Assembly: GCF_039654945.1 (NCBI RefSeq)
Contig: NW_027361899.1
Coordinates: 16,740,001 to 16,804,000 of the forward strand
DNA: 64,000 nt
Direction: 5' to 3'
Source: Dendrobates tinctorius
Lineage: Eukaryota
Below are positions 6,301-57,689 of this stretch, in pieces. Position 1 is the first letter of the stretch, and each line of letters opens with the position of its first letter. Both the position numbers and the translations under genes were made by a program. The notes beneath the pieces were generated by a model. The model was not told the origin of the DNA. It worked only from the letters and a program-made list of their open reading frames with translations, and ran no database searches.

Positions 6301-6970
6301 TAATACTGCCCCTATGTACAAGAATATAACTACTATAATACTGCCCCTATGTACAAGAATATAACTACTATAATACTGCCCCTATATACAAGAATATAAC
6401 TACTATAATACTGCCCCTATATACAAGAATATAACCACTATAATACTGCCCCTATGTACAAGAATATAACTACTATAATACTGCCCCTATGTACAAGAAT
6501 ATAACTACTATAATACTGCCCCTATATACAAGAATATAACTACTATAATACTGCCCCTATGTACAAGAATATAACTACTATAATACTGCTCCTATGTACA
6601 AGAATATAACTACTATAATACTGCCCCTATGTACAAGAATATAACTACTATAATACTGCCCCTATGTACGGGAATATAACTACTATAATACTGCCCCTAT
6701 GTACGGGAATATAACTACTATAATACTGCCTCCTATGTACAAGAATATAACTACTATAATACTGCTCCTATGTACAAGAATATAACTACTATAATACTGC
6801 CTCTATGTACAAGAATATAACTACCATAATACTGCCCCTATGTACAAGAATATAACTACTATAATTCTGCCCCCTATGTACAAGAATATAACTACTATAA
6901 TACTGCCCCTATGTACAAGAATATAACTACTATAATACTGCCCTTATATACAAGAATATAACTACTATAT
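3328..6970 (+). repeat. 35-bp minisatellite (tgtacaagaatataactactataatactgccccta), split by an insertion at 3933-4904
   Basis: Tandem arrays at 3328-3932 and 4905-6970. Confidence 0.97.
3933..4904. mobile_element. Unclassified interspersed repeat (LTR-like) interrupting the 35-bp minisatellite
   Basis: 4290-4775 is colinear with 8270-8765 (taggtgcagtt...ctgactgacctgagggtaagggggg...gagttccaaagtggaact). Class is uncertain. Confidence 0.5.
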
Positions 6971-14000: not shown

Positions 14001-14667
14001 ATATTTTTTATTTAAAAAAAAAAAAAAAAAACCTCTTGGCAACGAATCGCCTGGTAGTGCTGCTCTACGACCAGTTGTACTTTAAGGGAAATTTGTGACA
14101 ATATTCTTGGAGGTGATCACTTCTGGAACTAACACTGGATGAAGTGAACGAGAAATCGGATTCAGGATAATGTGAATTCTGCTCTAACGATCGTAGATGC
14201 AGTAAAGTCATATCGACTGTTCTTTTTTTATTGAGCACGTTTCTCTGATCCGCATAGATTGGAGAAGCGCATGCGCTTGGACATTGATGTGCTTCCCCAT
14301 AAGAAACGAGGAAATATAGATAATCAATGTGTCAATGGATATCAGGAAAATTGTCAGCACTTATTATCGGTTTTGTGTCTCTGGTAACAAAAGACCGGGA
14401 TCGTTATAATGCACTGAACATAACGGACATCATCTCCATGTAAATAATGTAACAGGGCCCGGACTGCACAGAATTCTAAACCGGTCTGGGATCATTCTTG
14501 ATGGCTTCAGGCCGTTCGTATCCTGAGGAGCTGTCCGTCTGTCCTATCTACTGTAACAAATGCGGTAATAAAGAATGTGCGGAGTACAATCACCAATGGC
14601 GACATACATAGTGAGCTAAAATTCAAAGGAAAGTACTAAACTTGATACAGTGTCCCATATGTGCATC

Positions 14668-17288
14668 CAGGCATTACGGCCCTGACTGGCGCATGGGGCC
14701 CGGTGGGCAGAGGGGGCCCAGTCTTTTCTGCTCACCGGGCCCCTACCCGCAGGTAAACCGGGCCCTTAGTGCAGTGCTGCGGGAGGCAGCTAAACGCTAT
14801 CGACATGCGGGCCCACCGGCCCGCACATCAATAGCTAACAGCCGCCAGCCAATCGGAGGCTGGCAGCTGACGTCAACCGTAGCACGCACCTCGCCAGCGT
14901 CTGATGTCAGTGTCAGTCGCCGGCTAGAGCGCGCTTCAGCAGCTTGGAGGGACAGATCCTCGCAAGCCGCTGGAGCGCGGCCAGATAAGAATAACTTGTT
15001 TGTTGCTTTTTTTTTTACAGCGGCGATACGAGGGGCCGGGGGCAGAATGCTGGAGACTGGGGCAGAATGCTGGAGACTGGGGCAGAATGCTGGAGACTGG
15101 GGCAGAATGCTGGAGACTGGGGCAGAATGCTGAACATGCAGCAGAATGCTGGAGACTGGAGCAGAATGCTGGACAACGGGGGCAGAATGCTGGACAACGG
15201 GGGCAGAATGCTGGACAACGGGGGCAGAATGCTGGACAACGGGGGCAGAATGCTGGACAACGGGGGCAGAATGCTGGACAACGGGGGCAGAATGCTGGAC
15301 AACGGGGGCAGAATGCAGATTGTTATGAATGAGTCACCGTAGGAGGCAAAAACAGAAATGCTAGCTAAGTCCAGAAAACCAGAGAAGTTGGTAGCTATCG
15401 GATTGCAGACCCCTGAACCTATCAACACAACTAGCAGTAGCCGTGGGGGGTTCCTACGATGCTCTAGACCCCTCGATCACAGCCGGAGGACTATATAGCC
15501 TAAAGACAGAAAGGGAAATCTAAACTGCCCCAGAGCAGACTCCAAAGCAAAAGGCAGCCCCCAACATATAATGACGGTGAAGCAAGAAGAAAGAACACTA
15601 ACACAGACAGAAAGATAGACTGAGCAAAGACGGGGCCCAAGCTAACTAGATAGGAAAGGACAGGAAGGCTGCTGTCTGAAATCCGTGAAAAACCCTATGA
15701 AAAAAAGAGCCAACAGACTGACAGTGAAAAAGGCCTTGAAGACGCTAGGCTTCAAAAAGACTATGTCAGTATTCAGGAATATTCTGAAGACAGAGCAACA
15801 GGCAAAAGGAGATTCAGCTCACCCCAGCAGGGAATGGCAGAATCCAGAAAAGCAAGGCAAACAAAAACAAAACACAAATGCTAAAAGGCAAAGCAGAAAA
15901 CTTAGCTTTAGAGGAGCAGGAATCAGACTGGTCTCCTAGAAGTCCACACAGAAATCACCCGCAGGGCAGAAGGGCGTCGGCAGCCTTGTATCCAGTCCGT
16001 GACTCCACTCAGCCAGTCATCATCATTAGGCTCAGGTGCCTGATAATCAGGCTCATTACCTTCCTTTACCAGAATAGGGAGTTCACCAGACCTCAGTGAC
16101 GAAGGGGAAAATGAACTCACAACAGGAGATTTCGGGAATGATTGGAGACAAATGGGGCAGGGTTGGATACAGATGGGGCAGGGTTGGAGACAGATAGCAC
16201 AGGATCATGGGGCAGGATGGTTATGATGGAGATCATATGGGGAAGAAAGGATACTCATGAGGGCGGGATGGGAGAACATATGGCTAAAGCCAGGAATGAG
16301 ACGGATGGGGGATATTATTACCCCCAGGGGCTAAATAAGGGATATTATTACCGCAGTGATGTATTTAATTTTTTGAGGCTACTGTTTTAAATGGGGGGGC
16401 CGTCCTGTTACTGTGCACAGGGACACTATGTCGCCTTTTTTTCTTCATGTGGTGTAATGTAGAAGCTGGGAAAAAATAAGTAATGTGTTCTGCAAGCGGA
16501 GCTCTAGGTAACTGTGTTATTTCCTGCAGAGATGAGCCCTGGCTGGAAGAAGTGATGGCGGTCTGTGCTGGATGAATGAAAAGCAAGGATGAATGACTTC
16601 ACCTAGAGACATCACTGGTGAGTTAGTGTGTTACCTATACACTGACACTATGCATTGTATACTATATACAGAGGTCCTGTGTATAATGTCACTAGTGATC
16701 ACTGTTTTACCTATACATTATATACAGAGCTCCTGTGTATAATGTCATTGATCACTGTATTACCTGTACACAGACACTGCATACTAAATACAAATCTCTT
16801 GTGTATAATGCCACTTACAGTGATAGTAAGTTTTTTTTTTATTAATGATCAGCATTGCAGTATTCAGTCACCATGTGGTGGTAATATGTGGTCTGGGCAT
16901 GGTGCGGTGGTATTTGTTCCTTGTATGTGATATTATTCGGACACTATGGTAGTAATATGTGGTCTGGTCTTGGTGTAGCGGTATTTGTTTCTTGTATGTG
17001 ATATCATTGGTCATTTTAAAAATTGAAAAATAAAAAATATACCTAAAGTGTATTGCATATTTTAACAAATATTTAATAGGTTACAGTAGAGTAGAGCCCG
17101 GCTTAAAAAAATTCTTTTGTCCAAAGCAAAAGCTGCCGGCTATATGTGTGATCTGGTGATGGGAACTGTTAATGTGTGATAGGGGACTGTGGACAGTTTG
17201 AGGGGTGGAGGCGGGGCTGGGTGGAGTCTCAAGGGGGCCCCAAACATTTTGCCAGTATGGGGCCCCAAAATTCCTAGTAGCAGCCCTG
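14668..17288 (+). mobile_element. Non-autonomous hAT-type element, left arm of the composite (5' TIR partly deleted)
   Basis: Colinear with 25638-27984. Ends ...tagtagcagccctg. Contains a 20/21-bp tandem array (15040-15317) and a solo LTR. Confidence 0.8.
15321..16124. mobile_element. Solo LTR inserted in the left arm
   Basis: Termini TGTTATGA...TCACAACA; flanks GCAGAT/GGAGAT. The empty site gcagaatGGAGATaagggg is visible in the right arm at about 26045-26063. Confidence 0.75.
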
Positions 17289-19880
17289 GCTCAGCTTCTC
17301 CAGAGCCATTGTTCCAGTCTGTATAAGGTCTGTGCTAAGTCTATTCCACATATGGTCTTCAGTGTATCCTCATCACATTCCAAGGATTCCAGGGCATAGT
17401 TCCAGCATATAGACGCCATCTTGCCACACCACGTCTGAACTAGCTTATGTTAGGTTAATAATTGATTTCATTAGCCATTCTCTCCTTCACAGTACAGCAA
17501 TAAGTTGTAATGTCAAGTCAGGCCCATATACATTTGGACCTCATGAACCAACAACTCCCAATATGTCTTAAACAATGATAAGGAGATGCTGGGAGTGGTT
17601 GTTATCAGTCATTATCAGACTGTGGACCATGCAGCAACCACAATACTGATGAAACGCAGGAAGTATCATATGTAAACGTTTACATCCAGGTACCTAATAG
17701 GAGACATCTTCTCCGAGTGGTTTCTTTCTTCTTATTTCCATCTTGACCAGATGCCATGATGACTTTTCACATCCACAGCTGTTCCCTGCAGACTTATCTC
17801 TTCTCCAATCTTCTGGAGCACATCCCCACATGGTGCCCTTAAAAATCAAAGTGTTACTAGAGTGCCTTCTGCATAAAAAATATCTGTCCATACTATGTCC
17901 TAAATACTGTAAGCCCCCTATGGTGTATGGCCTCTACACTGTCTGCCTTACTAATCCACAACCACATTACTGTCTGCCATTATCAGCTACAGTATAACTG
18001 CCACAATGTCCGTCATTAGGAACCACGGCCTATACCATGGCTGTCCTCTCTGTGTTCCCTTTTACTCTCTATATCTCCATACCGTCCCCGCTATGCTAAC
18101 CTTTCTCCATACTATGCACCCATTTCACGCTGTCCCCATTCCATATCCATTTTGTGCCCTCTCTTCACACTATGCCATCATACTGCCCACCATTTTGTCC
18201 TCTCCAAACTACACAGCATGATGGTCACCACAGCCACCAACAGTCTATACATAAAAGATTCCAAATATACACTATGATGTCAACCACAGCCTCCTATGCA
18301 GTACAATATAGACCACAGCCCCCGTTATATAGTATAGTCACCAGCACAGCCCTTAAAATACAGCATAATGCCCCCAACAGCCTCCCATATAATATGATGT
18401 CCCCACAGCCCCTCTTGTTATGTCCCCACAGCCCCTCTTGTAATGTCCCCACAAGCAACCCATCATAATGTCCTCACAGCCAGGACCTCATAATATCAAC
18501 AAATCCACAGTATAAGTCACCGCCTCATAGTTTTCCATATAGTATAATGCACCCAATAGTCCTCCATGTAATATAATGGATCCCATAGTCCTACATACAG
18601 TATAATGCACTGCCTATAGTCGTCCATATAGTATAATGCACCCCTGTAGTTCTCCATACAGTATTCTGGCCACCATAAAGTTCTCACTGATTAAAAAAAT
18701 AAATAAATACTAATTTCTCCTCCTCATTCGCCCACTGCTGTGGTCTCTGCAGTGAACTCTCTTTTAATCAATACAATCAGACCAGACTTATTATTATCAG
18801 ACTTAATATTATTCCAAGATCAGTATATCTTGGAATAATAATAAGTTCTAGAATTGGATGCATTTAAAAAAAAAACTCCCTGTGCTGAGATAATCTTATA
18901 AATGTGCCCCTGCTGTGTACTGTGTAATAGCTGTGTCTGTGTGCAGGAACATGGTCTGATCACACCACAGCTCCTGGGCAGAGGAGGAAGTAAAAGAGTA
19001 TACAGACAGTACAGCACAGGATCACAGCTGATTCTGTGAGATAAAGCATTTCCCTGCCTATCAAAGAAAAAATTTGCGATCCAGGGCGGCGCCATTTTGG
19101 TGGAGGACATTTTTTTCTTCTCTAGCAAGATGACGCCACCTGCGCAACAGTAGCTATTGGATCTCTATACAAACCGATAGCTGCTACTGCGCAGGCACCC
19201 CGGGCGCCATTTTCAAAATGGCTTTCTTTTTTTTTCCCTCGCTCAAGTATATCTGTAAAAGGGATTAAGTTCACAGTAACCATGCGATTATGCTGCAGCT
19301 CATTCATTATGCAAACTAGGGGGCAGGGCAGTGAGAGATCAGTGAGGGGGTCTGTAGTCTGCATTATGATCATCTAATCGGAGCACCGCATACAAGAACC
19401 CCGCCTTAGGGCACGAGAATCTCATTAATACGAAACTGAAAATAAAGATTAAGAAAAAGCCACAAGACGGATTTCATCAACCAAAGTATCATCTTATTCA
19501 GTATAACAGCACCGACCTGACATTGCCTGTAGGTCACTATGCACAATCCTGCTGACAGGTTCTCTTTAGGTGGGCGGCTTTATATAACAAGAGCGGATTT
19601 CGTTAGGAAATGGATAAGGAAAAAACAGAGTATTACAGAATAGAAGAAATTACTAACGAGAGTTATAAAATATGACGGTGTGGTTTTGCTCCTCAGAGAA
19701 TTTTGAAAATTGTGGAAACAATTGGGAATAAAATGTAGTGGAAGAACATTAAAACTCGGGGGAGCGATAATCAACAGCTTAAACATTACTGGGGGTCTCT
19801 ATTTTTAAATGTTTGTTTATGTGGGGGTTTTTATTATTTTTTTCTGAAAAATTTAAAAAAGGTTGGGAGTGAAGGAATTA

Positions 19881-20059
19881 GGCCGGGGTCACGCGCGAGT
19901 CTCTCGCCTCAATACCCGGCACTGCCGCCGGCGGCTCGGAGCAGAGAGTTCAGTTGCAAAGAAATACATGCAGCCGCACACTCCGGTCCCGAGTGCCAGC
20001 AGTATTGCCTTGCAGTGAGGCGAGTTTCTCGCATTGCACTCACAAGTGTGACCCCGGCC
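19881..20059. mobile_element. Short PIF/Harbinger-type MITE about 230 bp upstream of the GCNA-like ATG
   Basis: TTA-GGCCGGGGTCAC...GTGACCCCGGCC-TTA. Confidence 0.85.
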
Positions 20060-20285
20060 TTAGGAAGATTGTTGTTTTTAATTGATTTCCTCTTTATGTA
20101 TTGGTACTGTATGTTTTGTACAATTAAATAAAGTTGTAAAATTCAAAAAATGAGCAAACAATTACAGCATTCTAATGATGTCAGAATGGGCTGGAGGCTA
20201 TAGAATGCCGCGTCACCCAGGGTTCCGTTGAGGGTTTTAGTAGGCGTTTGTGGAGAGAGGAGTGTTGTGAGCGACTTGTGCAAAT

Positions 20286-23200
20286 ATGATGCCAAGAAAG
20301 CGATTTAAGAGTATTATAGTTCTCTGTGATACCGAGGACAGCAGTGATAATGACGATTTACATCAGGTGAGCATCATTTTATATTCTTAAATAAATAAAA
20401 TATATTTCGGATAAAGGTTCAAGAAAAAGATGGTGGGACAGAAAATATAGCTCCAAGTAGATGAGGAGATAACTCGGATCATGTCTGCAGAGTAAAGACT
20501 GCCCTCACTTGTAATATTTGTGACAATATGTCCATGTACTGGATGCATAATATTCTATGAAGACACAAATGTCACCACCGCCCCTATCCATATCCCAACC
20601 ATATGTGCCCCATACCCCCGTTATACTCTGTACGTGGAATAAGCACAATGGAGACCACACTCATATCGCTGCCCACCTGTAATCAGTGGAATATGGAGTA
20701 AGATTATAGATTGGAGATGTTCATGGTTATAGATTCTGATGTGTTTGTCATTTTTTTCAGTCTCATCGAAGAAAGAGGCCAATTCAGAGGTCTTCAGGCC
20801 AAGATAACACCACTGGCTTCAATTCGGGCCCGACTCCGAATTTACCAGGTACTGTAACCCTAATCTAGTAAAGACTCTGATGTATTAATAAGCCATTGTA
20901 GTCACCGGGTGCAGATCACGTGCACATTGTGGTCAGGGCTTGGATTTATCTTTATTATTCGTCTGTGGTAGAGTTTATATCAAACATTTCTGTTCAGCAT
21001 TTGGTCAGGAATATTCATGCAGGCGTTATATAGTCAGAACAGACATGGGATTTGGGGATTGCTTCTCATGGTGGCCATGTACAGGGCAGATTACTTTTGA
21101 TATTGAGCCTCAGTCTTTGCTATTACAATAGTCTAATAAGATATTTATGTTGTGTTGCCCCCACAGATCTGATTTTACCAACTTCAGATGATCCGGACAG
21201 TTCCAACTGGTAAGACTTACATCTCCTCCATTACTACAGTAGATACATGATGGGGATTAATGGCTAATGATGGCTCATAGTCTGTTACATTCATTTCACA
21301 GCTCCGATGACATCATTATTGATGATGACGATTCCAATAGAGCAGCAACTTCCATGTATAATAGTAAGTTATCATTTCTAGACAATCAAGGTTTATGTTA
21401 TTGTAGAAATAACAATGAATTTTCTGTACTGTCATGGGTCAGTTTCCAAATATAACAATTACAAGGGCGCTGATCAGGAGTTGGAACAGCGAGCCACCTG
21501 GGAAATGTGCTGTAAATGCCACTGTCAGAGAATGACAGCAGCATTTAACAGGTTAACAGAAGCAGGCAGCGCTCCAATCCACTCTCGGCTGTCAGAGGCA
21601 GATGATGACTGAATGACACGACCATCATCTGCCAAGAAAGAGGCGGGCTCAACTCCTGACCTCTCCCTTTATTCTCTACTGATAAGTGTCATACATGGTT
21701 GTTAAGGGGTTAAATTAAAGATACCTTACAGAGGTAATCCTATTTTACGCATGCTTGAGTTGTGTGGATCCTGTGTCTCGGATATTTCCACATTGGGAGA
21801 ACAAGTCACCGCCATGTTGACTTATGGCCATTGTTGTCCCTAGAGAATTTATTACAGATGTGCAACACATTTGCTTGTGTCTTTTCGGAAATCCAACAGA
21901 CATCAATGGACAAAGCCCTGCAGCAAGGAATCCCACATCTCCATTAAAACCAATGGAGGCTACCATGAATCAGCAAATGAGGTGATAGGACCTCTAGTCT
22001 TATTTTATATGAAGCCCTCGGAGAATGGACCCCTACCATTTGAGAGTCCACCCTCCGGCCATTGAGGACATGTTCACTTCTGATCTTGTACTGAGCACAT
22101 ACAACATTAATAAGGATAGATTAGCTGAGCAACAGGTGGGATACACATCTGGGAAAGTTTATGGACCCTGTTGTTGCTGAACCCCATTATAATTTCAGAT
22201 CCTGATCCCAATGGAAGATCCTGTGGATTTCTGGTGGTCTGGTCAACTATGTGTTCTGCTCTGGTCGGATCCCATATTCATAGTTTTATTAGTCCTCTAC
22301 ACTCTATATTTATAGACCCCTCTCTAGTACGGGCCTGCATACTAACATGTCTGATTTGAGCCTTATAAAAAGTATTTTCACTCTTTCATATTTCTGTACA
22401 GATAATTTACCGTCTGATAGCGAGGAGAGCTCCGCTACAGAGGAGAGGTAAGTTAGGCCAGATCCATCTAACTCTATATAAAGCCATGAACTAGGCAGGA
22501 TGTTTCCTGTGGATTTATATATGATTCCCTATCTTTTCCAGGACACCACGATGTAACATCCCCGGCTGTCTCCTGGAAGAAATTATTTCTCCTACTTCCA
22601 TCTATGTTACCCACTTCCAGGAAAATAAGGAGGAGCTGGTGGAGCGACTGTACAACTGGTACAACCGGACAGTCTTCGACAATAAGGTATCACATCTTAT
22701 CATGGGTTTCTGGGTGATACATGACTTCTCCATTATCTCCCCTTTAAACAATAAATTCCAAGAAAAATGGCTCTATCTTTCTGAAAGGCAGATTCCTAAC
22801 CCCATTGTCATGTTTCTGTAATATAGTTATTGAACATCTCAGGTAAAACTCACTTAGTTTGGTAAATGCCGTCACCCTCTTCCTATCTGTGGGACAAGAG
22901 GAAACCTTAGATGATCCACCATTGCAGAGACAAAAAAGATTAGCAACTTTTGGCTTGAAGTTCAAAGGATTTTTACATTTATTTATAAAAAACATTTAGT
23001 TGATATTTGGACATTTTAGAATAAGTTTATTTTTATTTTTGTTCTCACATCTTGGACTTCTCGGTAGACCCCATGCCCCATACAAGTAGGCCAGTGCTGT
23101 AAATCACACATAAGAGTTGGGCACTTTGTAAGATCGGGGTCAAAGAGTTTCTAGATGTAACGGAATTTGTTTTCTTTATTTTAGCTCCCTTTGAAAATGG

Positions 23201-24443
23201 CCATTTTGTGGAACAAGAGGCTGAGAAAAACATCCGGCCGATGCTGGAATAACTTGTACAAAAACCGCCGTTTCTCATATATTGAGCTTTCCGAAAAAGT
23301 CTGCGATTCTGCCGGTAGGTTTCACATCACATCCATCCTACAGCTTCATAAGACAACCTGTATACAGGGCAAAAAAACTGCTACTTGTTATGTAGAACAT
23401 CTTATAAACTCATTGTACATACTGTCATAAGAAAAACTAAGTACACCCTCTTTGAATTCTAATATTTTACATATTAGGAGAAAATTAAAAAAAAAAGTAT
23501 CAGCTCCATAGAAAGTCCTAAAAGTAGGGAAATACAATCTCAGAAAACATGAAAAAATAAAATATTGCATCATTATTTAACAAAAAGTAGGCCAAAAGGC
23601 AAAAACGGTGTGTGATTAAGTACACCATTGATGCAACTTCAAGTTATTGCTGCTAAAGAGGTTTCTAAAAGCTATTGATTCATGGGGTGTACTTATTTTT
23701 CCACTCTCTGCTTCTGCATTTTGAAGTAGTATTCAGTAAATAAATAACGGCGCGGTTGACTTGTCACGTGTTGTTCATCTCCAGAAGTAGTTTGTATTTT
23801 GTCCTGCTATGTAAAACCCAATAGTTCAATCAGGGTGTACTCAGATTTTCTCATAACTGTATAAACTCTTGTTTTAGAGCGAGTAAGATCCGCACTTGCG
23901 CACGAGCTGTGCCATGCCGCCTGTTGGCTAATCGCCGGTGAACAAAGAGACAACCATGGCCCGTTATGGCAGGCTGTCACAAGAAGGGTAAATCTTATCC
24001 ATCACGAGCTGCCAAAAGTGACACGATATCACAAATATACCATCAACTACAACTACAAGTACAAATGCGACCTGTGTGGTGAAGAGTAAGTGGATTTTAT
24101 ATGACTCATCTCCTCCGTACACACAATCACTGCGGAGAGACGTCTGTGCGGTTCTGTTGGTGGAATGCTTTCATACTTTACTACTATCAGAGCGGACTGA
24201 CGTCTGGGGGCTGTAGGGTTTAGGATGCTACGTGTTATATTTTCTGTGCTGGGCCAGTTCTTAATATATTGATTTCAATTTGTTCTTTTTAATATAATCC
24301 ATGGTATTAATGAACGTTCATTCCAGTCCAGTAACCAATATCCCTCTTATCTTTGCAGAATTGGGCGATTTAGACCAATACCTGACAATAAACGTAAATG
24401 CCGCCGGTGCAGAGGTCGAATGCGTCAACTACCCATCAGCTAA
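20286..24443 (+). CDS. gcna-like: GCNA/ACRC-like SprT-family zinc metalloprotease, 295 aa, 9 coding exons, nested antisense in galnt14 intron 1
   Basis: Exons 20286-20366, 20761-20848, 21167-21209, 21302-21363, 22402-22447, 22542-22686, 23185-23314, 23878-24085 and 24359-24443. All introns are GT-AG and phases are consistent (888 nt, no internal stop). Protein: MMPRKRFKSIIVLCDTEDSSDNDDLHQSHRRKRPIQRSSGQDNTTGFNSGPTPNLPDLILPTSDDPDSSNCSDDIIIDDDDSNRAATSMYNNNLPSDSEESSATEERTPRCNIPGCLLEEIISPTSIYVTHFQENKEELVERLYNWYNRTVFDNKLPLKMAILWNKRLRKTSGRCWNNLYKNRRFSYIELSEKVCDSAERVRSALAHELCHAACWLIAGEQRDNHGPLWQAVTRRVNLIHHELPKVTRYHKYTINYNYKYKCDLCGEEIGRFRPIPDNKRKCRRCRGRMRQLPIS. CxIPGC, WNxR, IELSxKVCDSA, HExxH...HG and CxxC...CxxC are GCNA SprT hallmarks. 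The five small N-terminal exons are less certain than the domain exons. Confidence 0.88.
22542..22686 (+). CDS. GCNA-like exon 6 (start of the SprT region)
   Basis: ttttccag acceptor, gtatc donor; encodes TPRCNIPGCLLEE...NKEELVERLYNWYNRTVFDNK. Confidence 0.9.
23185..23314 (+). CDS. GCNA-like exon 7
   Basis: ttttag acceptor, gtagg donor; encodes LPLKMAILWNKRLRKTSGRC...IELSEKVCDSA. Confidence 0.9.
23422..23859. mobile_element. Old non-autonomous Tc1-like element in GCNA-like intron 7
   Basis: Inverted termini TA-CTGTCATAAGAAAAACTAAGTACACCC / GGGTGTACTCAGATTTTCTCATAACTG-TA. Confidence 0.65.
23878..24085 (+). CDS. GCNA-like exon 8 with the catalytic HExxH (HELCH at 23901-23915)
   Basis: gttttag acceptor, gtaag donor; encodes RVRSALAHELCHAACW...NHGPLW...YKCDLC. 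Confidence 0.92.
24359..24443 (+). CDS. GCNA-like last coding exon (second CxxC, stop TAA at 24441-24443)
   Basis: ctttgcag acceptor; encodes IGRFRPIPDNKRKCRRCRGRMRQLPIS*. Confidence 0.85.
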
Positions 24444-24743
24444 ACATGTAACTATTCTTCAGAATATTTAGCCTCTAATTTGGTTTCTTTAGAATGTAAA
24501 GTCGAGACACTTTTCTATATTTTCCCCTGAGTAACGAGACAATGGATATCTGTGTCCATCACCAGCAATTAGCAGCAAAGATCCAGAATCCGTCCTCATA
24601 GGTCACCAGATAAACCCTGGCTACATTTCCCAGAACTTGCTGGCTATGGAATGATTGACAATTCCCAGCAATTATAGAAGAAATGCAATATAGTTTTTAT
24701 TACTGTATTTATTTGTTCTAATGATTATTTTTTCTTGCTGCAG

Positions 24744-25333
24744 AATTTTTTAAATTCTGGTTGAGAATGATGAAAGTTATCAGCCTACTGCTGCGGAAGA
24801 ATCGCCAACACACAATCTGACGGGCGAGATGAGTCCCTCTGACATTACATGCCGTATAGATCTATTGTGAGTGCTCTCACCATAGCCGTCTGGTTCATGT
24901 CGCATTTTTCTAACATTGCACTATTATTGGCAACGTCCTATTTTCAATTTCCATATTGGCCTTCCTTGTAGACAATATATAATGCAATATTTCACGTCTA
25001 TTTCAACTTCAGCCGATGACCAGAAATATAATGCTGAAGTTGCCTTCTCTGAGTTGGTTTCTTTTGATCACCAGTATATTTTGTCAAGCTTTTTAAAAAC
25101 ATCTTTCAATTGTTTTCAGGTTAATGAGAAAGGCGACTTATCGCTTCTATACAGGCATGACCCATCTTGGAAGAAAAAGCTGAATACCTGCACCGACCTG
25201 CGCTGAGAACATGATCAGATGCAGTTTCCAAGACCTGGAGAATCTCTACAAGTGCTGGACATTTCAACTTCAATAGTCATAAAGAGTTTTTTTTTTTTCT
25301 AATTTTTCTAAGTTAGATATAAATACCAATAAA
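24744..25333 (+). other. Putative 3' UTR exons of the GCNA-like gene (24744-24866 and 25120 to about 25350) with polyA signal
   Basis: Donor gtaact 4 nt after the stop; acceptor tttttcttgctgcag; donor gtgagt at 24867; acceptor tgttttcag at 25119; AATAAA at 25328-25333. Confidence 0.55.
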
Positions 25334-25637
25334 AATGAATATATTAATTCTTTCTAATTTTGGATTTTTGTTCTGCAAAACGATGGCTGTTGATAAACTT
25401 ATTACAATCAATGAAACACAGAGAAACACAGTACAACAAACGTGCAAAAAATACTCTGTTGTAAAATAATAGATATATCAGTAAACAGCAAGTGCTAGTA
25501 AAGAGATGACAAGAAAAAAGGGCATTTAGTTGATACGTTTTTTGCAAAAAATGTATACTAAGTCGCTCTACCAAACGTCAAGCTATAGCCATCAGAGCAG
25601 TCCCTAACCTGATGTATTTAAAACCTGACCATGTGAA

Positions 25638-27984
25638 CAGGGCCACCATCAGGGCATTACTGCCCTGACTGGCGTATGGAGCCCGGTGGGCAGAGGGGGC
25701 TCGCATCAGGCCCTGTCCCTTCTGCTCACCGGGCCCATACCGGCAGGTGAACCGGGCCCTCAGAGATGCGGGAGCAGCTAAACACTATTGACATGCGGGC
25801 CTGCCGGCCTGCACGTCAATAGTTAACAGCCGCCAGCCAATCGGAGGCTGGCAGCTGACGTCAGCCGCAGCGCGCACCTCGCCGGCGTCTGACGTCAGTG
25901 TCAGTCGCCGGCTAGAATGCGCTGCAGTGTGGAGGGACGGAGCTTCGCCCGCCGCTGGAGCGCGGACCAGGTAAGAAGAAATTGTTTTTGTTTTTTGACA
26001 GCGGCGATCCGGGGGGCCCGGGGGCAGAATGCTGGACGCTGGGGGCAGAATGGAGATAAGGGGCATGATTGGAGACAGACTGCACAGTATCATGGGGCAG
26101 GATGGATACGATGGAGATCATATGGGGAAGAATGGATACTCATGAGGGCAGGATGGGAGAACATATGGCTAAAGCCAGGAATGAGACACATGGGGGTCAG
26201 GATGGGGGATATTATTACCACAGGGGCTAATTAAGGGATATTAATTACTGCAGTGATGTATTTCATTTTTTGAGGATACTGATTAAATGGGGGAGCAGTC
26301 CTGTTATTGTGCAGAGCGACACTATCGCCTCTTTTTCTTCATGTGGTGTAATGTAGAAGTTGGGAAAGAATAAGTAATGTGTTCTGCAAGCGAAGCTCTA
26401 GATAACTGCAGAGACGAGTCCTGGCTGGAAGACGTGATGGCGATCTGTGCTGGATGATTAAAAAGCAAGGATGAAGTACTTTACCTAGAGACGTCACTGG
26501 TGAGTCAGTGTGTTACCTGTACACTGACACTATACACTGTACACTATATACAGAGGTCTTGTGCATAATGTCACCAGTGACCACTGTGTTACCTGTACAT
26601 TATATACAGAGCTCCTGTGTATAATGTCATTGATCAATATATTACCTGTACACAGACACTGCATACAAAATACAGATCTCCTGTGTATAATGCCACTTAC
26701 AGTGATAGTATTATGTTTTTTTATTAATGATCAGTATAGTAGTATTCAGCCACCATGTGGTGGTAATATGTGGTCTGGACATGGTGTGGTGGTATTTGTC
26801 CTGTTATGAATGGGAAACCGAGGAGGAAAAAAAAGACAACAAGCTAAGTCTCAGAAAACCAGAGAAGTTGGTAACTACGCAGATTGCAGATCCCTGAACT
26901 TACCCGCACAACTAGCAGCAGTCGTTGAGCGTTCCTACGTTGGTCCTAGATGCCTCGTCACAACTGGAGGACTACATAAGCCTAAAGCAGGAAAAGAGGA
27001 AAACTAACTGCCCCAGAGCAGACCCCAAAGAAAAGAAAGCCCCCCACATGTATTGACGGTGAAACAAGATGAAAATACAAACAAAGGCAAGAAAATAGGC
27101 TGAGCAAACGATGGGGCCCGGCTAACTAAAAAGGCCAGAAAGGAAAGACACTGTCTACAATCTGCCAATAAAAACCTACAAAAATATTGTCCAACACTTC
27201 TGATAGCAAAATTAACCCTGAAGTCACTAGACTTCTAAACCTATATGAGCACTCTGAAATATTCTGAGACAGAGCAAAAAAGAGGCCAATCTAATAAGGG
27301 ACAAAGAGCAGATTGGCAAATACTGATTAATAGGAGTGGAATTTCAGCATAGCCCCAGCAGGGGCAGGCTGATTACACAAAAACCTGAATTGACAACAAG
27401 CGCAAGTGTGAACATTAGCAAAAAAACAAACTTAACTTGAGAAGACTGGAAGAGAGCTGAAGTCCAGGACCTGAGAAGCAGACTGAATCACCAGCACATG
27501 GATAGGGTGTCGGCTGTCTTATATCCAGTCTGATACTCCAGAGATCCAATCGTTATCTTCCTCATCAGGTGGCAGATCACTACCACTTAAACCACAACCG
27601 CACTACCTCCTGTCACCACCAGAGGGATATGGTAGTAATATGTGGTCTGGTCCTGGTGTGGCGATATTTGTTCCTTGTATGTGATATTATTGGTCATTTT
27701 AAAAATTGAAAAATAAATAAAAATATACCTAAAGTGTATTGCATATTTTAACAAATATTTAATAGGTTACAGTAGAGTAGAGCCCGGCTTAAAAAAATTA
27801 TTTTGTCCAAAGCAAAAGCTGCCGGCTATATGTGTGATCTGGTGATGGGAACTGTTAATGTGTGATAGGGGACTGTGGACAGTTTGAGGGGTGGAGGCGG
27901 GGCTGGGTGGAGCCTGGGCGGAGTCTCAAGGGGGCCCCGAAAATTTTGCCAGTATGTGGCCCAAAATTCCTAGTGGCAGCCCTG
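25638..27984 (+). mobile_element. Non-autonomous hAT-type element, right arm of the composite
   Basis: Imperfect TIRs CAGGGCCACCA... / ...TGGCAGCCCTG; colinear with the left arm. Confidence 0.8.
26802..27627. mobile_element. Related solo LTR, truncated at its right end, inserted in the right arm
   Basis: Begins TGTTATGAATG and is colinear with, but diverged from, 15321-16124 (shared agaaaaccagagaagttggt, aactgccccagagcagac). The insertion point differs from that of the left-arm LTR. Confidence 0.7.
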
Positions 27985-28177
27985 TGTGCATCTCAGAATT
28001 TCGGAGAGAACTGGCGATGATGTTGGTTTAACTGGTCCAAAAAAACCGATTTACAACGGTCCTACATACAATACAACCATGGAGATCGCATGGCATTATC
28101 CCATAACCGCCATCATACATAGGCTCTAGTGAGGGCTGCATATTTCACAAAAGAGTAACCATCCCAGAAACCTATAA

Positions 28178-28525: not shown

Positions 28526-28988
28526 TAAAGATTCAGGAACTGGAAGAAAAAAACTATTTGTATAGAAAGGTAATAAATGCAAACGATGGAAGATGGAAAC
28601 TACAACCTGCTAATCCTCCCTTCTAAATTTGACAGAGGTTGATTTTATCTGCAAAACCCTTCACAGTCTGCGTTACTGACCCCGATCACGAGGACGCCGA
28701 TCTGACTGACAGATGCTTCTATAATTGATTCCTAAGGAGCTTCTCACATGATCAGCTCATCCATAGCAAATACTTGTAAAAAACAATAGGGTGAAGGCAA
28801 ATCCACGTGAGTCAGCCATTCCTGCAATGCTTCCTGCACCCAGGTCTCTCATCATTTTACCTTTCCATTGGAATAAAGACGACATATTTGATTATTAGTA
28901 AAACGTCTAGCACTATCATGGCAAATCACAGAGTTCTCACAGTGTCACATTCAGCAAACCTCCAATATACTGATAACGAATATTCTAG

Positions 28989-29368
28989 TACACAGGGGCA
29001 GTATTATAGTAGTTATATTCTTGTACATAGGGGCAGTATTCTAGTAGTTATATTCTTGTACATCGGGGGCAGTATTATAGTAGTTATATTCTTGTACATA
29101 GGGGCAGTATTATAGTAGTTATATTCTTGTACATAGGGGGCAGTATTATAGTAGTTATATTCTTGTACATAGGGGGTAGTATTATAGTAGTTATATTCTT
29201 GTACATAGGAGCAGTATTATAGTAGTTATATTCTTGTACATCGGGGGTAGTATTATAGTAGTTATATTCTTGTACATAGGAGCAGTATTATAGTAGTTAT
29301 ATTCTTGTACATAGGAGCAGTATTATAGTAGTTATATTCTTGTACATAGGAGCAGTATTATAGTAGTT
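28989..29368 (-). repeat. Same 35-bp minisatellite, reverse orientation, left part
   Basis: ggggcagtattatagtagttatattcttgtacata units. Confidence 0.95.
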
Positions 29369-30162
29369 GTTACTGTTACGCTGCGGACGCAGGTGACGAG
29401 AGTGGACCCACTGGGCCGTGACGCCGAGCCCTCCCCGAGCGAGCGCACCAATGGACCGACCCCTATACAGGGACCGTTAGGGAACAGACTCGGGAAGTTC
29501 TAGCGCCACGGCAGCCAGGACCAGGGGTCGGCTCAGGAGGGTGAACAGATGATGAGGAACAGAGGAAGATCCGGAGAGGAACCAGGATGACCAGGGTCCA
29601 AAGGCTGAGGAAGAAGGAGAAGGACGGAGGAGGATGGCGGGGGTCCAGGAAGAGGCGAACTGAAAAGGGAAGGAGACACAGGGGTTAGCAGGAGGCACGG
29701 ACCGGAGAGTCAGAGGAACACTGGGGACACAGGCGGAAGACACAGGGGTTAGCAGGAGGCACAAGACACAAGGGGTTAACTAGTGCGCAGCTTGCAAGGG
29801 ACTAGCAGCAGAGAGCGCGGCCTAGACAACCGAGAGGTAACTCAATAGTCAGGCGCCTCCACTAAGGGAGGGCGGCCTGAAATACCTGGTGGTGGCCTCT
29901 GATAGGTCGGGAGGCCGGTCCGGGTCAGGTCACGCCAGACAGGTGGCTGCCGGCAGAGGCGTGCGGCTTATCCCTCCGGCGCGTGCGCAGAGGCACAGTG
30001 CGCGCGGCCGAGGGAAGTGGAGGAGAGCGTCGGGACGCCGGCCGCCGGAAAGCGAGGGGAGCGGAGGCGCGCGTGCAGGACGCGTCAGAGGAGCGAATCG
30101 GGGCAGAAGCAGGAGCGGTGAGTATGGCAGCGGGAGCGGCGAAACGGGGAGGGGTGCTAACA

Positions 30163-33100
30163 GTACCCCCTCTCTTACACTCCCCTCCACTGCGTCTGGC
30201 TAAAAACCTCTTAAGAATGCGTGGGGCACTGATATTCTCCTGCGGCTCCCAAGATCTCTCCTCGGGACCAAAACCTTTCCAGTCGACCAAAAAAAAGGTT
30301 TTACCTCTAACTTTTTTCGAGGCCAGAATGTCTTTTACTTCGAACACGTCATCAGACGTGACAGGAAGAGGAGAAAGGTTCGGGGCCGGGTGAAACCGAT
30401 TCAGGACAACCGGTTTAAGGAGAGAGACGTGGAAGGAGTTGGGAACCCGAAGCGACGCAGGCAACTCCAGTTTGTAAGATACGTTGTTAAGACGTTTGAG
30501 AATCTTGAAAGGCCCAATGTAGTGCGGTCCCAGCTTGTAAGAAGGGAGCTTTAGCCTAATGTACTTGGCCGACAACCAAACTTGTTGACCTGGGAGGTAG
30601 GTTGGAGCATCCAAGCGTCTTTTGTCAGCGTGCCTCTTCATGCGCTCCCCAGACCTCCGGAGGGCCTCCTTAGTTTCGGACCAGATCCTAGAGAACTCTT
30701 GGGTCAGAGAATCGGCTGCAGGCACACCGGAGGAACCGGACAAAGGTAGAGGGACACCAGGGTGCATGCCAAAGACCACGAAAAATGGAGACTTGGCTGA
30801 TGACTCGCTGGGATGGTTATTGTAGGAGAATTCTGCCCAGGGAAGTAGATGGACCCAGTTATCTTGATGAGCGTTAGAGAACTGCCGTAAGTAGGACGCT
30901 AGTACCTGTTTAACGTGTTCAACCTGACCATTGGACTGGGGATGGTACGCGGATGAAAAGTCCAGTCTTATCTCTAGAAGTTTACACAAGGCCCTCCAAA
31001 AATCGAGAGGTGAACTGTACACCTCGATCGGAAACAATATGCTGTGGAAAGCCGTGGAGGCGGAAGATGTGCTGGATAAAAATCTTCGCCAACTCTGGAG
31101 CGGTGGGCAGCGCAAGTAGAGGAACAAAATGGGCCATCTTGGAGAAGCGGTCGACCGCTACCAGGATAGTCGTAGATCCGGAAGATTTAGGCAGATCCGT
31201 GATGAAATCCAAACCTATATGTTGCCATGGAACCGAGGGAATCAGGAGAGGAAGCAGAAGGCCGGCGGGTGGTCGCCTAGGAATCTTGACCTTGGCGCAA
31301 GAGGGACAGGAGGCCGTGAAGTCTGTCACATCCTGGCGGAGTGAGGGCCACCAATAAAAACGAGCGATGAGCTCAAATGTCTTCTTGACTCCGACATGTC
31401 CGGAAATTTTAGAGGAATGTCCCCAATGCAGTACCTTTTTTCTTTCTGAGTCAGGGACGTAGGTCTTGCCGGGGGGAGGAGTAATCAGTCTCACCGGGGC
31501 CACAGTGATGATCTTAGCGGGATCGATAATGTGAGTTGGTTCCTCCATCAGATCAGGGGACTGCAGAGACCGGGACAATGCGTCCGCCTTGATGTTCTTT
31601 GGCCCGGGACGGAAACGCAATTCAAAATCGAACCGACCAAAGAAGAGGGACCATCTGGCCTGCCGAGGGTTAAGTCTCTGAGCTGACTGGAGATATGCAA
31701 GGTTTTTGTGGTCGGTAAAGATGGTAAACGGATGGACCGACCCTTCAAGAAGGTAACGCCACTCCTCCAGTGCCAACTTTATGGCCAACAGCTCGCGATC
31801 CCCGATGGCGCAGTTACACTCAGCCGGCGAGAAGGCCTTTGAAAAGAACCCGCAGGTAATCAGTCGGCCGGACGGGGACCTCTGTGAGAGCACTGCACCT
31901 GCTCCAGTGGAAGAGGCGTCTACCTCCAGGATGAATGGCTTATTAGCCTCGGGTCGGTGTAGGACAGGTGCAGTCGCGAAGGCTTGCTTCAGGCAGGAAA
32001 AGGCCTCTTCAGCCTCCGGGGGCCAGGACGAGGAGTTGACGCTCTTGCGAGAGAGACTGGAGATGGGTTTGATGATGGACGAAAAATGTGGCACAAATTG
32101 ACGGTAATAGTTGGCGAAGCCGAGGAACCTTTGAATCGCCTTGACCCCCACTGGGCGGGGCCATCGAAGAATAGCCGACAGTTTCTCAGGATCCATCTCC
32201 AGCCCAGAATCTGAAACGATGTAGCCCAAGAAAGGCAAGGAAGACTGCTCAAAGAGACACTTCTCAAGCTTCGCGTAGAGGCGATTCTCCCGCAGACGTT
32301 GTAGGACCAGACGAACACTCCTCCTATGGGACGCCAGATCCGGGGAAAAAATAAGGATGTCGTCCAGATACACCACCACGCAGGAGTATAACAAGTCTCG
32401 GAAGATATCATTGATGAACTCCTGAAAGACCGCGGGAGCGTTGCAGAGACAGAAGGGCATAACCAGGTATTCGTAATGCCCGTCCCGGGTGTTAAAGGCG
32501 GTCTTCCATTCGTCACCAGGGCGAATGCGGATGAGGTTGTAAGTTCCGCGTAGATCCAACTTCGAGAAGATGCGGGCTCCCCGCAACCGGTCAAAGAGTT
32601 CAGGAATGAGAGGCAACGGATACTTGTTCTTCACAGTAATGTCGTTCAGGCCCCGGAAATCAATACAAGGACGGAGAGAACCGTCTTCTTTACAAAGAAA
32701 AACCCGGCTCCGGCCGGGGAGGAAGATTTCCGTATGAACCCTCGAGCTAAATTCTCACGAATATACTCGGACATGGCCGTAGTCTCTGCAGGGGACAAGG
32801 GATAAATTCGCCCTCGGGGCGGAGTGGTCCCGGGTCGCAGGTCAATAGGGCAGTCATACGGGCGATGCGGGGGAAGAACCTCTGCCTCCTTCTTATCAAA
32901 TATGTCAGAGAATGCCCAGTATGCGGCTGGTAGAGCCTCGGGACCCGAGGAGGCTGGTGGGGGTTTGGCCGGGCGGACAGACCCCAGGCACTTCTCTTGG
33001 CAGGGATGCCCCCAGCGGAGGACCTCACCGGAACGCCAATCCAAGACAGGTTCATGTGTCCTAAGCCATGGAAGACCTAGCAGCACAGCATGGGAAAGGT

Positions 33101-33428
33101 TGGGAAGGACGTAGAAAGCGATCCGCTCCTGGTGCAAGGCCCCAATTTGCAGACACACCTCCTCCGTTACCAGGAACACAGATTCTCGTAGGGGTCTTCC
33201 ATCTACTAAGGTGATGACACGTGGAGTCTTCAGGGAGATCACGGGAATCTGATACTTCTTCACCTCCTTCAACCTAATGAAGTTCCCTGCCGCGCCCGAG
33301 TCCACATAGGCCACCTCCGAACCACGTCTCTGACCCACAACCAACTGAACCGAAAGGGTAAGGGGGTGAGAGGAGTGAGACACACCTAGATCGGCCTCTC
33401 TTACCTGCCCTAGGTGGAGGAGTTTCCC
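30163..33428 (-). pseudogene. Gypsy pol (PR-RT-RH-IN-chromodomain), broken by two frameshifts (about 32685 and about 30998)
   Basis: ORFs 32646-33383, 30982-32634 and 29925-31127 join across VKK/DGSL and FTSRF/WRAL. Confidence 0.9.
33368..33428 (-). promoter_or_regulatory. -1 ribosomal frameshift signal (G GGA AAC plus predicted H-type pseudoknot) at the gag/pol junction
   Basis: Slippery heptamer at 33428-33422; stem CACCTAG/CTAGGTG; loop GAGAGG can pair with downstream CCTCTC; pol is in the -1 frame. Confidence 0.8.
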
Positions 33429-33589
33429 GGTCTCTCAGGACAGGAGCGTAGGAAGCGAGACGCGCTGCCGCAATACAGGCACAGACCCTCCATCAGTCTC
33501 TCCTTACGACGTTGTTCTGCCAACTTGACCCGATCCACCTGCATTGGCTCAGGCGCCGGACTGGAGGATGCCCAGGGGGACGTGGGCTG

Positions 33590-36046: not shown

Positions 36047-36825
36047 TTTATATTCTTCTACATAGGAGCAGTATTATAGTAGCTATATTCTTGTACAAAG
36101 GAGCAGTATTATAGTAGTTATATTCTTGTACATAGGGGCAGTATTATGGTAGTTATATTCTTGTACATAGGAGCAGTATTATAGTAGTTATATTCTTGTA
36201 CATAGGAGCAGTATTATAGTAGTTATATTCTTGTACAAAGGAGCAGTATTATAGTAGTCATATTCTTGTACATAGGAGCAGTATTATAGTAGTTATATTC
36301 TTGTACATAGGAGGCAGTATTATAGTAGTTATATTCTTGTACATGGGGGCAGTATTATTAGTTATATTCTTGTACATAGGGGCAGTATTATAGTAGTTAT
36401 ATTCTTGTACATAGGGGCAGTATTATAGTAGTTATATTCTTGTACATAGGGGCAGTATTATAGCAGTTATATTTCTGCATAAAGGGGCAGTATTATAGCA
36501 GTTATAATCTTGTATATAGGGGCAGTATTATAGTAGTTATATTCTTGTACATAAGGAGCACTATTATAGTAGTTATATTCTTGTATATTGCGGCAGTATT
36601 ATAGTAGTTATATTCTTGTATATAGGGGCAGTACTATAGTAGTTATATTCTTGTATATAGGGGCAGAATTATAGCAGTTATATTCCTGTACATAGGGAGC
36701 ACTATTATAGTAGCTATATTCTTGTATATAGGAGGCAGTATTATAGTAGTTATATTCTTATACATAGGGGCAGTATTAAAGTACTTATATTGTTGTACAT
36801 AGGGGGCAGTATTATAGTAGTTGTA
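36047..36825 (-). repeat. Same 35-bp minisatellite, reverse orientation, right part
   Basis: Resumes immediately after the hAT terminus. Confidence 0.95.
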
Positions 36826-42963: not shown

Positions 42964-44516
<1,553 letters not shown>

Positions 44517-52048: not shown

Positions 52049-52049
52049 C

Positions 52050-53440: not shown

Positions 53441-53814
53441 TGGTCTCTGGGCGTCGCTGGACAAATCACAATCTATGGTAGCGGTGATCGCTGTTGTTAA
53501 AGGCGGATGTCATTTCTGTAGTACAGCCCTCACCTGCCCCGTGTAGAGAAGCTCCTGAGCCCGCGCCAAATACCATGACATGCTGCATGACATAATAGTA
53601 CATCATGGTGGATTAAAGGGTTGTTTGCGGAATCATCAAGATCCCCTGCTGGCAGCTCCTGTGTAATCACCCACCAATGATGTCATCAATGTGCGCAGTC
53701 GGAGACACTGCAGCCATGGTGGTACATTCAGGCCATGCAGGCTGCTCACAGAAGCATCAGAAATATGCGGCCTGGCACTCGCTGCTTTACTGAGACCATC
53801 CCCCACTTCCCACC

Positions 53815-57665: not shown

Positions 57666-57689
57666 ATACCTGGTTTGGGGAGATATATA

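Follow-up and report, generated by a model that had tools for sequence, protein, structure and literature searches.

Introduction

GCNA is a germline protease implicated in removing proteins that have become stuck on DNA. The canonical protein, also named ACRC, has been described as a four-domain germ cell nuclear acidic peptidase, and is reported to be encoded, outside plants and some protostomes, by what is essentially a single gene in each species (Carmell et al. 2016, PMC5098910). In Drosophila, genes of the related Spartan family (mh, CG2694 and CG11322) have been duplicated repeatedly and have evolved under positive selection (Brand et al. 2024, PMC11210505), and one candidate for a sex-ratio driver in D. 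obscura is a set of amplified Gcna SprT domains (preprint 10.1101/2025.05.14.653954). A precedent of another kind is found in maize, in which hAT macrotransposons consist of closely linked Ac/Ds elements in direct orientation, as in the Ccd1-carrying macrotransposon at White Cap (preprint 10.1101/082677). Here we report the analysis of a stretch of 64,000 nucleotides from the poison frog Dendrobates tinctorius (contig NW_027361899.1, positions 16,740,001 to 16,804,000; hereafter the window, in which all positions are numbered from its first letter), which at 20286-24443 of the plus strand carries a nine-exon GCNA-like gene. We consider it probable that the 295-aa product of this gene belongs to a multi-copy, GCNA/ACRC-derived subfamily, found so far only in hyloid frogs, with a conserved core and fast change elsewhere, and that the gene arrived at its present site within a macrotransposon.

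A nine-exon gene with an intact protease core

The gene model, rebuilt from the sequence of 19800-25000, comprises nine exons that sum to 888 nt, corresponding to 295 aa and a TAA stop codon, with AG at all acceptors and GT at all donors (Table 1). It reproduces the 295-aa frame over nine GT-AG exons that had been proposed in an earlier, sequence-only reading of the same DNA, and all the motifs named there were found: HELCH, NHG, CDLC, CRRC, PRKRFK, RRKRP, SIIVLCDTED and DIIIDDDD. The same exon plan, with sizes of 46/145/130/208/85 nt for the downstream exons, is found in six homologues annotated in two further poison-frog assemblies. A model with a tenth exon at 21900-21981 was discarded, as the frame is broken and no spliced contig uses that exon.

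The search with the Pfam SprT-like profile (PF10263), which the sequence-only reading had suggested as a check, was positive for exons 7 and 8, matched collinearly with E-values of 1.9e-4 and 2e-10, respectively; exon 8 scored 40.9 bits, the cut-off being 25.6. In an alignment of 36 sequences, short and canonical, no variation was seen at the HExxH histidine and glutamate residues, the third histidine and three of the four cysteines of the zinc ribbon, and the fourth cysteine is at least 90% conserved. In other words, nothing of the SprT zinc-metalloprotease core (HExxH, third His and catalytic Glu) is missing, and a four-Cys zinc ribbon of the C2C2 type follows it.

The fold was analysed on the nine-exon homologue P0170 (67% identical to the window protein), by an AlphaFold run that used a GCNA-family alignment. 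In this model residues 1-110 have a predicted local distance difference test score (pLDDT) below 50, and residues 115-296 a score of about 95. The SprT domain of human SPRTN (6MDX and 6MDW) gave the sole significant matches to the model in the Protein Data Bank by Foldseek (E 1e-6, probability 1.00), and a SprT fold is predicted for the window protein through this homologue. As in 6MDX, the closest structural match, the model consists of a metalloprotease subdomain and a zinc-binding subdomain. Identity to SPRTN is, however, 22%, the frog protein stops directly after the zinc ribbon, without the long C-terminal region of SPRTN, and by sequence it groups with GCNA instead.

To compare the architecture with that of canonical GCNA/ACRC, the proteins of frogs, platypus, shark and a cyprinid fish were aligned. 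The canonical RLRDT[LV].HE.CHAATW and [ST]RCH correspond to RVRSALAHELCHAACW and TRYH in the window protein; the changes from RDTLxHE to RSALAHE and from TRCH to TRYH, noted in the sequence-only reading, are borne out by this alignment. The canonical GCNAs run about 55 residues past the zinc ribbon (TPFAKFVKENY...HAEVMRKLSADF, including HAEVMRKLS), a tail that matches the two-helix HMG box described at the GCNA C-terminus (Carmell et al. 2016, PMC5098910). The window protein ends instead, its stop codon being placed 13 residues past the last cysteine; the two-helix box is absent, and no relic of an HMG-like tail was found by tblastn anywhere in the 64-kb window. The region preceding the protease is 99 aa long, versus 230-345 aa in the canonical vertebrate GCNAs, so that about two thirds of the disordered region is missing; it is acidic (19% D+E) and disordered according to the homologue model, but it does not amount to the large acidic intrinsically disordered region of GCNA. 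The loss of the tail and the short pre-protease region are in agreement with the description of the protein as streamlined. The Pfam zinc-ribbon family PF17283 is recorded, among precomputed matches, for the canonical GCNAs and not for the short family.

What is left of the N-terminus carries two basic patches resembling nuclear localisation signals (NLS) and two or three hydrophobic-acidic stretches that can be read as putative SUMO-interacting motifs (SIM). The latter, SIIVLCDTEDSSDNDD, DLILPTSDD and DDIIIDDDD, have a V/I/L core with an acidic or phosphorylatable flank and are conserved in the copies of Ranitomeya variabilis. Since canonical frog GCNAs contain SIM-like motifs of the same style (VMVTDSSDEE, FIVESDDDD and SIVIK), the N-terminal motifs look inherited. 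Thus, the short proteins resemble canonical GCNA/ACRC in the SprT-type zinc metalloprotease followed directly by a C2C2 zinc ribbon, in the coinciding exon boundaries of the protease region and in an acidic, Ser-rich N-terminus with SIM-like motifs, which in the homologue model is disordered. They differ in that the frog short family is multi-copy, scattered and several-fold faster evolving, and in the missing two-helix HMG-like tail.

A short-protein subfamily beside canonical GCNA

The catalytic exon 8 (68 aa) served as query in an exhaustive HMMER search, which yielded 866 proteins at E <=1e-3, the best with 64% identity. The top matches that were looked up were all GCNA or GCNA-like: hyloid-frog models of 200-360 aa, named "germ cell nuclear acidic protein-like", came first (R. 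variabilis, Rhinoderma darwinii, Hyla sarda, Anomaloglossus and D. tinctorius), and the canonical GCNA/ACRC of other vertebrates came next. Judging from these top matches, GCNA is a nearer relative of the protease domain than SPRTN or Wss1. Many more copies in the same frogs, as well as in Engystomops, Eleutherodactylus and Pristimantis, came to light when the R. variabilis protein P0001 was used in a word-based search, which also gave canonical GCNAs of 480-583 aa in D. tinctorius, Ranitomeya imitator, Phyllobates terribilis, Anomaloglossus and Dendropsophus.

The nearest proteins to the window gene are products of 220-400 aa from hyloid frogs, mainly poison frogs. By local BLAST of the 295-aa model, D. 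tinctorius P0174 is 81% identical over 204 aa, and R. variabilis P0167 and P0170 match it end to end at 66% and 67% identity. Collinearity is kept throughout this alignment, which begins with MMPRKRFK[SR]IIVLSD... and ends with ...RQL[PS][IV]S, the N-terminal MMPRKRFKSIIVL motif included. The exact window protein was absent from the protein collections, which were searched via two full-length relatives, the 81% match being the best. The RefSeq models named "germ cell nuclear acidic protein-like" in R. variabilis, D. tinctorius, Anomaloglossus, Rhinoderma, Engystomops, Eleutherodactylus and Hyla sarda belong to the same subfamily: they have the nine-exon plan and the N-terminal motifs of the window gene, and identity among the poison-frog copies is 58-81%.

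In a maximum-likelihood tree of 52 sequences, the 35 short frog proteins form one clade (Shimodaira-Hasegawa-like approximate likelihood ratio test, SH-aLRT, 99), apart from the clade of canonical frog GCNAs (99). The branches of the latter are very short, with about 0.05 changes per column from D. tinctorius to R. imitator, and those of the short family are several-fold longer; the window protein is at 0.25-0.38 from its nearest relatives, as the sister of P0174 (99) within a ten-member poison-frog subclade. At least three subclades each hold several hyloid families, indicating that the subfamily is old within Hyloidea. The tree does not settle the placement of the short clade relative to other tetrapod GCNAs. 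No short-family member was seen in non-hyloid frogs among the protein collections, non-hyloid genomes not having been searched directly. The designation of the gene as a paralog is upheld by the separate, well-supported clade and by the fact that D. tinctorius, R. imitator, P. terribilis and Anomaloglossus also have a canonical GCNA of 480-570 aa. Because the clade is separate and its copies are scattered across related genomes, we assign the gene, which is not a single-copy gcna orthologue, to a GCNA-derived paralog subfamily rather than to GCNA proper.

Dispersed, intron-containing copies

The DNA around six homologues, L001 from D. tinctorius and L002-L006 from R. variabilis, was compared with the window, the exons of the R. 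variabilis genes being located by exact spliced mapping. These five genes lie on CM120275.1 at 69.7, 71.3 and 731.5 Mb and on CM120274.1 at 102.2 and 170.3 Mb. The pair of exons 3-4, which encodes a SIM-like acidic module, is tandemly duplicated in L002, L004, L005 and L006, giving proteins of 333-334 aa in which one more SIM-like motif is present; a single pair is found in L003 and in the window gene. The window is similar at DNA level to both L002 and L003 over 19566-25413, and the older R. variabilis copies have about 6.2 kb in common; the younger ones (90-94% identical) have more than 12 kb in common, with differing ends. L001 is about 93% identical to 22096-25640 of the window, but is without exons 1-4 and contains two intron insertions of 4-5 kb. 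Upstream of the window gene, a palindrome resembling a miniature inverted-repeat transposable element (MITE) is found at 19882-20060, about 230 bp 5' of the ATG, at a site across which the R. variabilis homologues run uninterrupted. As the copies are distant from one another, keep their introns and are in some cases defective, the family spreads as intron-containing genomic DNA, with birth and death of copies.

The intron insertions of L001 contain sequences that are also present elsewhere in the window. A 43-bp satellite at 62201-63618 recurs there (L001 10200-10298 and 14137-14368), and a repeat of about 770 bp at 58864-59628 is 94.7% identical to L001 19239-20013, an identity that suggests a recently active element common to the two loci.

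Spliced transcripts of the family

By a search with the stretch, part of the locus was found in 20 public sequencing runs, several of which had a word share of 0.12-0.19, close to the share that exons take up in the searched DNA. Contigs from four of the runs were placed on 20100-25000, and their joints were read after correction of the cut offset. Introns 1, 3, 4, 5, 7 and 8 are each reproduced to the base by spliced contigs, and introns 2 (exon 2 to 3) and 6 (exon 6 to 7) agree with loose contig ends. In run X7, which is probably RNA, the depths of the exon bins are in the hundreds to thousands, versus tens in the introns, with spliced contigs at about 300-940; runs X11 and X9, from a different organism than X7, gave three joints at low depth, the spliced contigs of X11 being at 10-22. 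In view of their mismatches to the window, the contigs establish transcription and correct splicing for the family, the abundant ones deriving from sister copies. The junctions predicted by the sequence-only reading, which had asked for spliced reads, are present in family transcripts, and the abundant transcripts are not those of the window copy itself.

Exons that change faster than introns

The whole-gene ratio of nonsynonymous to synonymous change (dN/dS, Nei-Gojobori) ranged from 0.5 to 1.5, and was 0.75-1.0 for the window gene versus its nearest relatives. In the SprT domain it was 1.16 between the window and L001, 1.63 between L005 and L006, 1.17 between L004 and L006, and about 0.45 in the oldest pairs. 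Exon divergence exceeded noncoding divergence in all three recent pairs: 0.086 versus 0.049 for the window and L001, 0.077 versus 0.047 for L005 and L006, and 0.106 versus 0.062 for L004 and L006. After removal of CpG sites the ratio of exon to noncoding divergence was 1.55-1.76 (one-sided Fisher p 3e-3 to 3e-5), and nonsynonymous differences per site also exceeded the noncoding difference (p 1.2e-3 to 1.5e-7), in comparisons whose pairs are not all independent. The protein sequence of recent copies thus changes faster than their introns while the active site stays fixed, and since such an excess is not predicted by neutral decay, it points to diversifying selection. Together with the long branches and the dN/dS values of about 1 or more between recent copies, it gives substance to the earlier remark that the gene is fast-evolving.

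These data bear directly on the possibility that the gene is a young, still-intact pseudogene, that is, a chance duplicate produced by transposon activity, drifting neutrally and with no function of its own. A whole-gene dN/dS close to 1 is what such a copy would display; sister copies are truncated or broken (L001 and P0259), the abundant transcripts in the examined runs belong to other copies, and the MITE-like insertion is close to the start codon. On the other hand, drift predicts that exons and neutral noncoding DNA diverge at the same rate, and here the exons are faster; the active-site residues do not vary in the 36 sequences compared; and the frame, 16 of 16 splice sites and all catalytic and zinc-binding residues are intact despite an exon divergence of about 9% from the nearest copy. 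On balance, we judge simple decay unlikely.

Two hAT-type elements and a probable macrotransposition of the gene

Two direct repeat copies lie on either side of the gene, at 14664-17288 and 25647-27984. Their aligned blocks are 77-93% identical, and one internal segment is shifted; they correspond to the hAT-type elements A and B of Table 1. At the left end of A, TGTGCATC is followed by CAGG and then by CATTAC, which fits the consensus given a deletion of 13 nt between two CAGGG repeats. The same element is complete in L003 (3852-7910, minus strand), with the terminal inverted repeats CAGGGCYRCCAYYAGG, present at both ends of this copy and of element B, and with a perfect 8-bp duplication, GTATTATG, as fits a hAT-type element. 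The inner flanks of A and B (GCTCAGCT and CATGTGAA) have no match. The continuation of repeat X, cut by element B, is absent after B, but is present in L001, which runs through this point without element B. The outer TGTGCATC pair, the unmatched inner flanks and the halved repeat X are what would be expected if the 13.3-kb block from A to B had moved as a unit. Most likely, judging from this layout, the window copy and about 8 kb of surrounding DNA came as a 13.3-kb macrotransposon via the outer hAT ends.

Within A and B no open reading frame (ORF) of >=150 aa was found, except a TTG-started one at 14642-15133 that extends into the GC-rich minisatellite of A and lay outside the Pfam scan; among the eight other long ORFs of the window that were scanned, no hAT transposase was detected, but only Ty3/Gypsy domains or nothing. 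As the elements are non-autonomous, their assignment to hAT is based solely on the length of the duplication and on the terminal repeats. A segment of 480 bp occupies different positions within the two elements (15321-15798 and 26802-27277, 77% identical) and may be a separate small element, inserted independently. The complete L003 element lies upstream of the L003 gene, and a partial copy of the same hAT-type element was also observed downstream of it (16243-17256), an association that could be due to chance or be recurrent.

Where the R. variabilis copies share a boundary, no convincing terminal repeats, Helitron-like ends or target duplications were found; the recurrent left boundary near L002:9180-9190 adjoins a TA/CA microsatellite, and the ends of the younger copies do not coincide. 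The suggestion that the gene is transposon cargo is supported for the window copy, with its hAT ends and matching outer 8-bp duplication, but does not extend to the five R. variabilis copies or to L001, around which there is no such signature. The arrangement is similar to that of the maize macrotransposons, with two direct hAT elements whose outer ends enclose a host gene, and an 8-bp duplication outside the pair and none for each single element; it differs in the vertebrate host, in both elements being non-autonomous, in the damage to one terminal repeat and in having been deduced from a single locus.

Unlikely alternatives: loss of activity and ordinary orthology

A further possibility is that the protein is no longer a protease, but binds SUMO or DNA and acts as a decoy or as a regulator of SPRTN or canonical GCNA, or else serves the transposon that carries it. 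The lost HMG-like tail and the loss of most of the disordered region, the rapid change of the protease-domain surface and the location within a mobile block could all be taken in this sense. A pure decoy, however, would have no need of zinc ligands and a catalytic Glu, which are invariant, and neither of the two flanking hAT elements, both non-autonomous, is related to the gene, other copies of which have no transposon boundary; we regard this explanation as very unlikely. That the gene is the ordinary single gcna orthologue of D. tinctorius, merely shorter than in other vertebrates, is scarcely credible: its best database matches are named GCNA and its SprT domain is about 50% identical to that of canonical GCNA, but it falls in a clade distinct from canonical frog GCNAs, themselves nearly identical among poison frogs, related species carry both kinds of gene, and there are many copies at unrelated chromosomal positions, this one inside a block bounded by transposon ends.

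Several observations weigh against the interpretation that we prefer, namely a GCNA-derived protease under selection for change and carried here by a macrotransposon. As for selection, a dN/dS near 1 is equally expected of a decaying copy, and some copies are indeed broken or truncated, such as L001, without exons 1-4, and P0259, which ends in read-through; the homologues were chosen from protein databases, so that their intact frames are partly an effect of ascertainment, and noncoding divergence was calculated from BLAST-alignable stretches and is possibly underestimated. As for expression, there are several exon positions at which the abundant spliced contigs do not agree with the window, and most placed contigs are 90-99% alike. 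Protease activity, SUMO binding and nuclear localisation are all presumed from sequence motifs. Finally, the macrotransposon is deduced from a single 8-bp identity and the layout at one locus, where the left terminal repeat of A is damaged; the empty target site of the composite was not found among the compared loci, and a strict scan for an 8-bp duplication combined with an inverted repeat gave nothing credible around the gene in L001-L006.

Features of the locus and other repeats in the window

The coordinates of the gene, of its flanks and of the associated elements are collected in Table 1.

Table 1. Features of the GCNA-like locus of D. tinctorius (window positions); contig joints are exon-exon junctions read in spliced contigs
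Feature	Position	Strand	Remarks
Candidate 8-bp target-site duplication, left copy TGTGCATC	14660..14667	.	Outside A
hAT-type non-autonomous element A	14668..17288	+	Right terminus intact; left terminal repeat with 13-nt internal deletion (or 10-nt truncation); 21-bp minisatellite inside
Upstream region common to R. variabilis copies (likely promoter and 5' untranslated region)	19566..20285	+	Broken up by palindromic MITE-like insertion 19882-20060
Exon 1, codons 1-27	20286..20366	+	Start codon, NLS-like PRKRFK, first SIM-like motif SIIVL followed by acidic/Ser run; contig joint 20366/20761; N-terminus collinear with R. variabilis homologues
Exon 2	20761..20848	+	Basic RRKRP patch, Ser/Gly/Pro-rich linker; loose contig end at 20848 goes on into first bases of exon 3
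Exon 3 (LILPTSDDPDSSN)	21167..21209	+	Contig joint 21209/21302
Exon 4	21302..21363	+	Second SIM-like motif DIIIDDDD; contig joint 21363/22402
Exon 5, acidic/Ser linker (LPSDSEESSATEE)	22402..22447	+	Contig joint 22447/22542, in two runs
Exon 6, folded domain begins (N-terminal helices, SprT domain)	22542..22686	+	Alignable to canonical GCNA; pLDDT of homologue model high from about residue 115
Exon 7, beta-sheet part of SprT domain	23185..23314	+	Pfam PF10263 positions 21-55; contig joint 23314/23878
Exon 8, catalytic core HELCH, third ligand His in NHG, first CxxC of zinc ribbon	23878..24085	+	Pfam PF10263 positions 61-108; H, E, H, H, C invariant in 36 sequences
Exon 9, second CxxC (CRRC), TAA stop, without HMG-like tail	24359..24443	+	Contig joint 24085/24359, in three runs
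3' flank common to R. variabilis and D. tinctorius copies	24444..25413	+	DNA similarity
Repeat X, left part	25412..25637	+	Cut by element B; second copy 36971-37208
hAT-type non-autonomous element B	25638..27984	+	Same orientation as A; terminal inverted repeats CAGGGCCACCATCAGG / CAGGGCTGCCACTAGG; both termini present
Candidate 8-bp target-site duplication, right copy TGTGCATC	27985..27992	.	Outside B

The remainder of the window is rich in repeats. Pieces of a Ty3/Gypsy long terminal repeat retrotransposon, in several broken frames, occupy 29925-34063 (minus strand) and encode aspartyl protease, reverse transcriptase, RNase H, the zinc finger and core of integrase, SH3 and chromodomain sequences. 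They lie between two blocks of the same 35-bp satellite (unit ATGTACAAGAATATAACTACTATAATACTGCCCCT), which forms arrays at 3314-6969 (minus strand), 28980-29368 and 36048-36875, with 87-95% matches and in both orientations. A GC-rich 28-bp minisatellite at 49042-52051 (109 copies, 96% matches), with related arrays at 48365-48920, gives rise to overlapping ORFs of up to 1218 aa without Pfam match; the long frames in the intervals 48-52 kb and 56-57.5 kb were accordingly rejected as genes, being minisatellite arrays with no match in Pfam. Further minisatellites were observed at 53810-54920, 56191-57670 and 1112-1877, and a run of 652 N at 43395-44046 is an assembly gap or a masked segment.

Discussion

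Since RefSeq already names such proteins automatically, the kind of gene described here is known; our full-text literature search found no paper describing the short GCNA-like family of hyloid frogs. Three aspects appear to be undescribed: the expansion in hyloid frogs, the truncated architecture with faster-than-neutral change, and the apparent hAT macrotransposition of one copy.

If our interpretation is correct, the GCNA-like protein would enter the nucleus, where its SIM-like motifs would draw it to SUMO-modified proteins trapped on DNA, which it would then cleave, as reported for GCNA/ACRC. Not decay but a shift of targets or regulators, for example repeats, topoisomerase adducts, transposon proteins or conflict of a drive-like kind, would underlie the rapid change. 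The window copy itself would owe its position to macrotransposition, the outer ends of the two flanking non-autonomous hAT elements having carried the 13.3-kb block.

A broader idea, which we advance tentatively and consider somewhat unlikely as it stands, is that hyloid frogs, and poison frogs above all, represent the vertebrate counterpart of the arms race of the Spartan family in Drosophila. According to this idea, a truncated GCNA-derived protease of crosslink repair would have been recopied again and again to other chromosomal sites, at least once by hAT macrotransposition, with positive selection on the protease surface arising from germline conflict with transposon proteins, satellite-bound adducts or drive elements in giant, repeat-rich genomes. 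The two cases share the recurrent duplication of SprT proteases of crosslink repair and the signs of adaptive protein change; they differ in the lineage, here a vertebrate one, in the parent gene, and in that the frog copies arose at DNA level, contain introns and are widely scattered.

To our knowledge, gene movement by two transposons is well documented in maize and seldom seen in animals. The locus would be an example, rare among vertebrates, of a multi-exon host gene that was apparently moved in its entirety by two cooperating cut-and-paste transposons. Moreover, if the interpretation holds, dozens of short copies, which diverge faster than neutral DNA and yet preserve their active site, would constitute a natural series for the study of how a crosslink-repair protease chooses its targets, and the same series would address which pressure makes such repair genes diversify.

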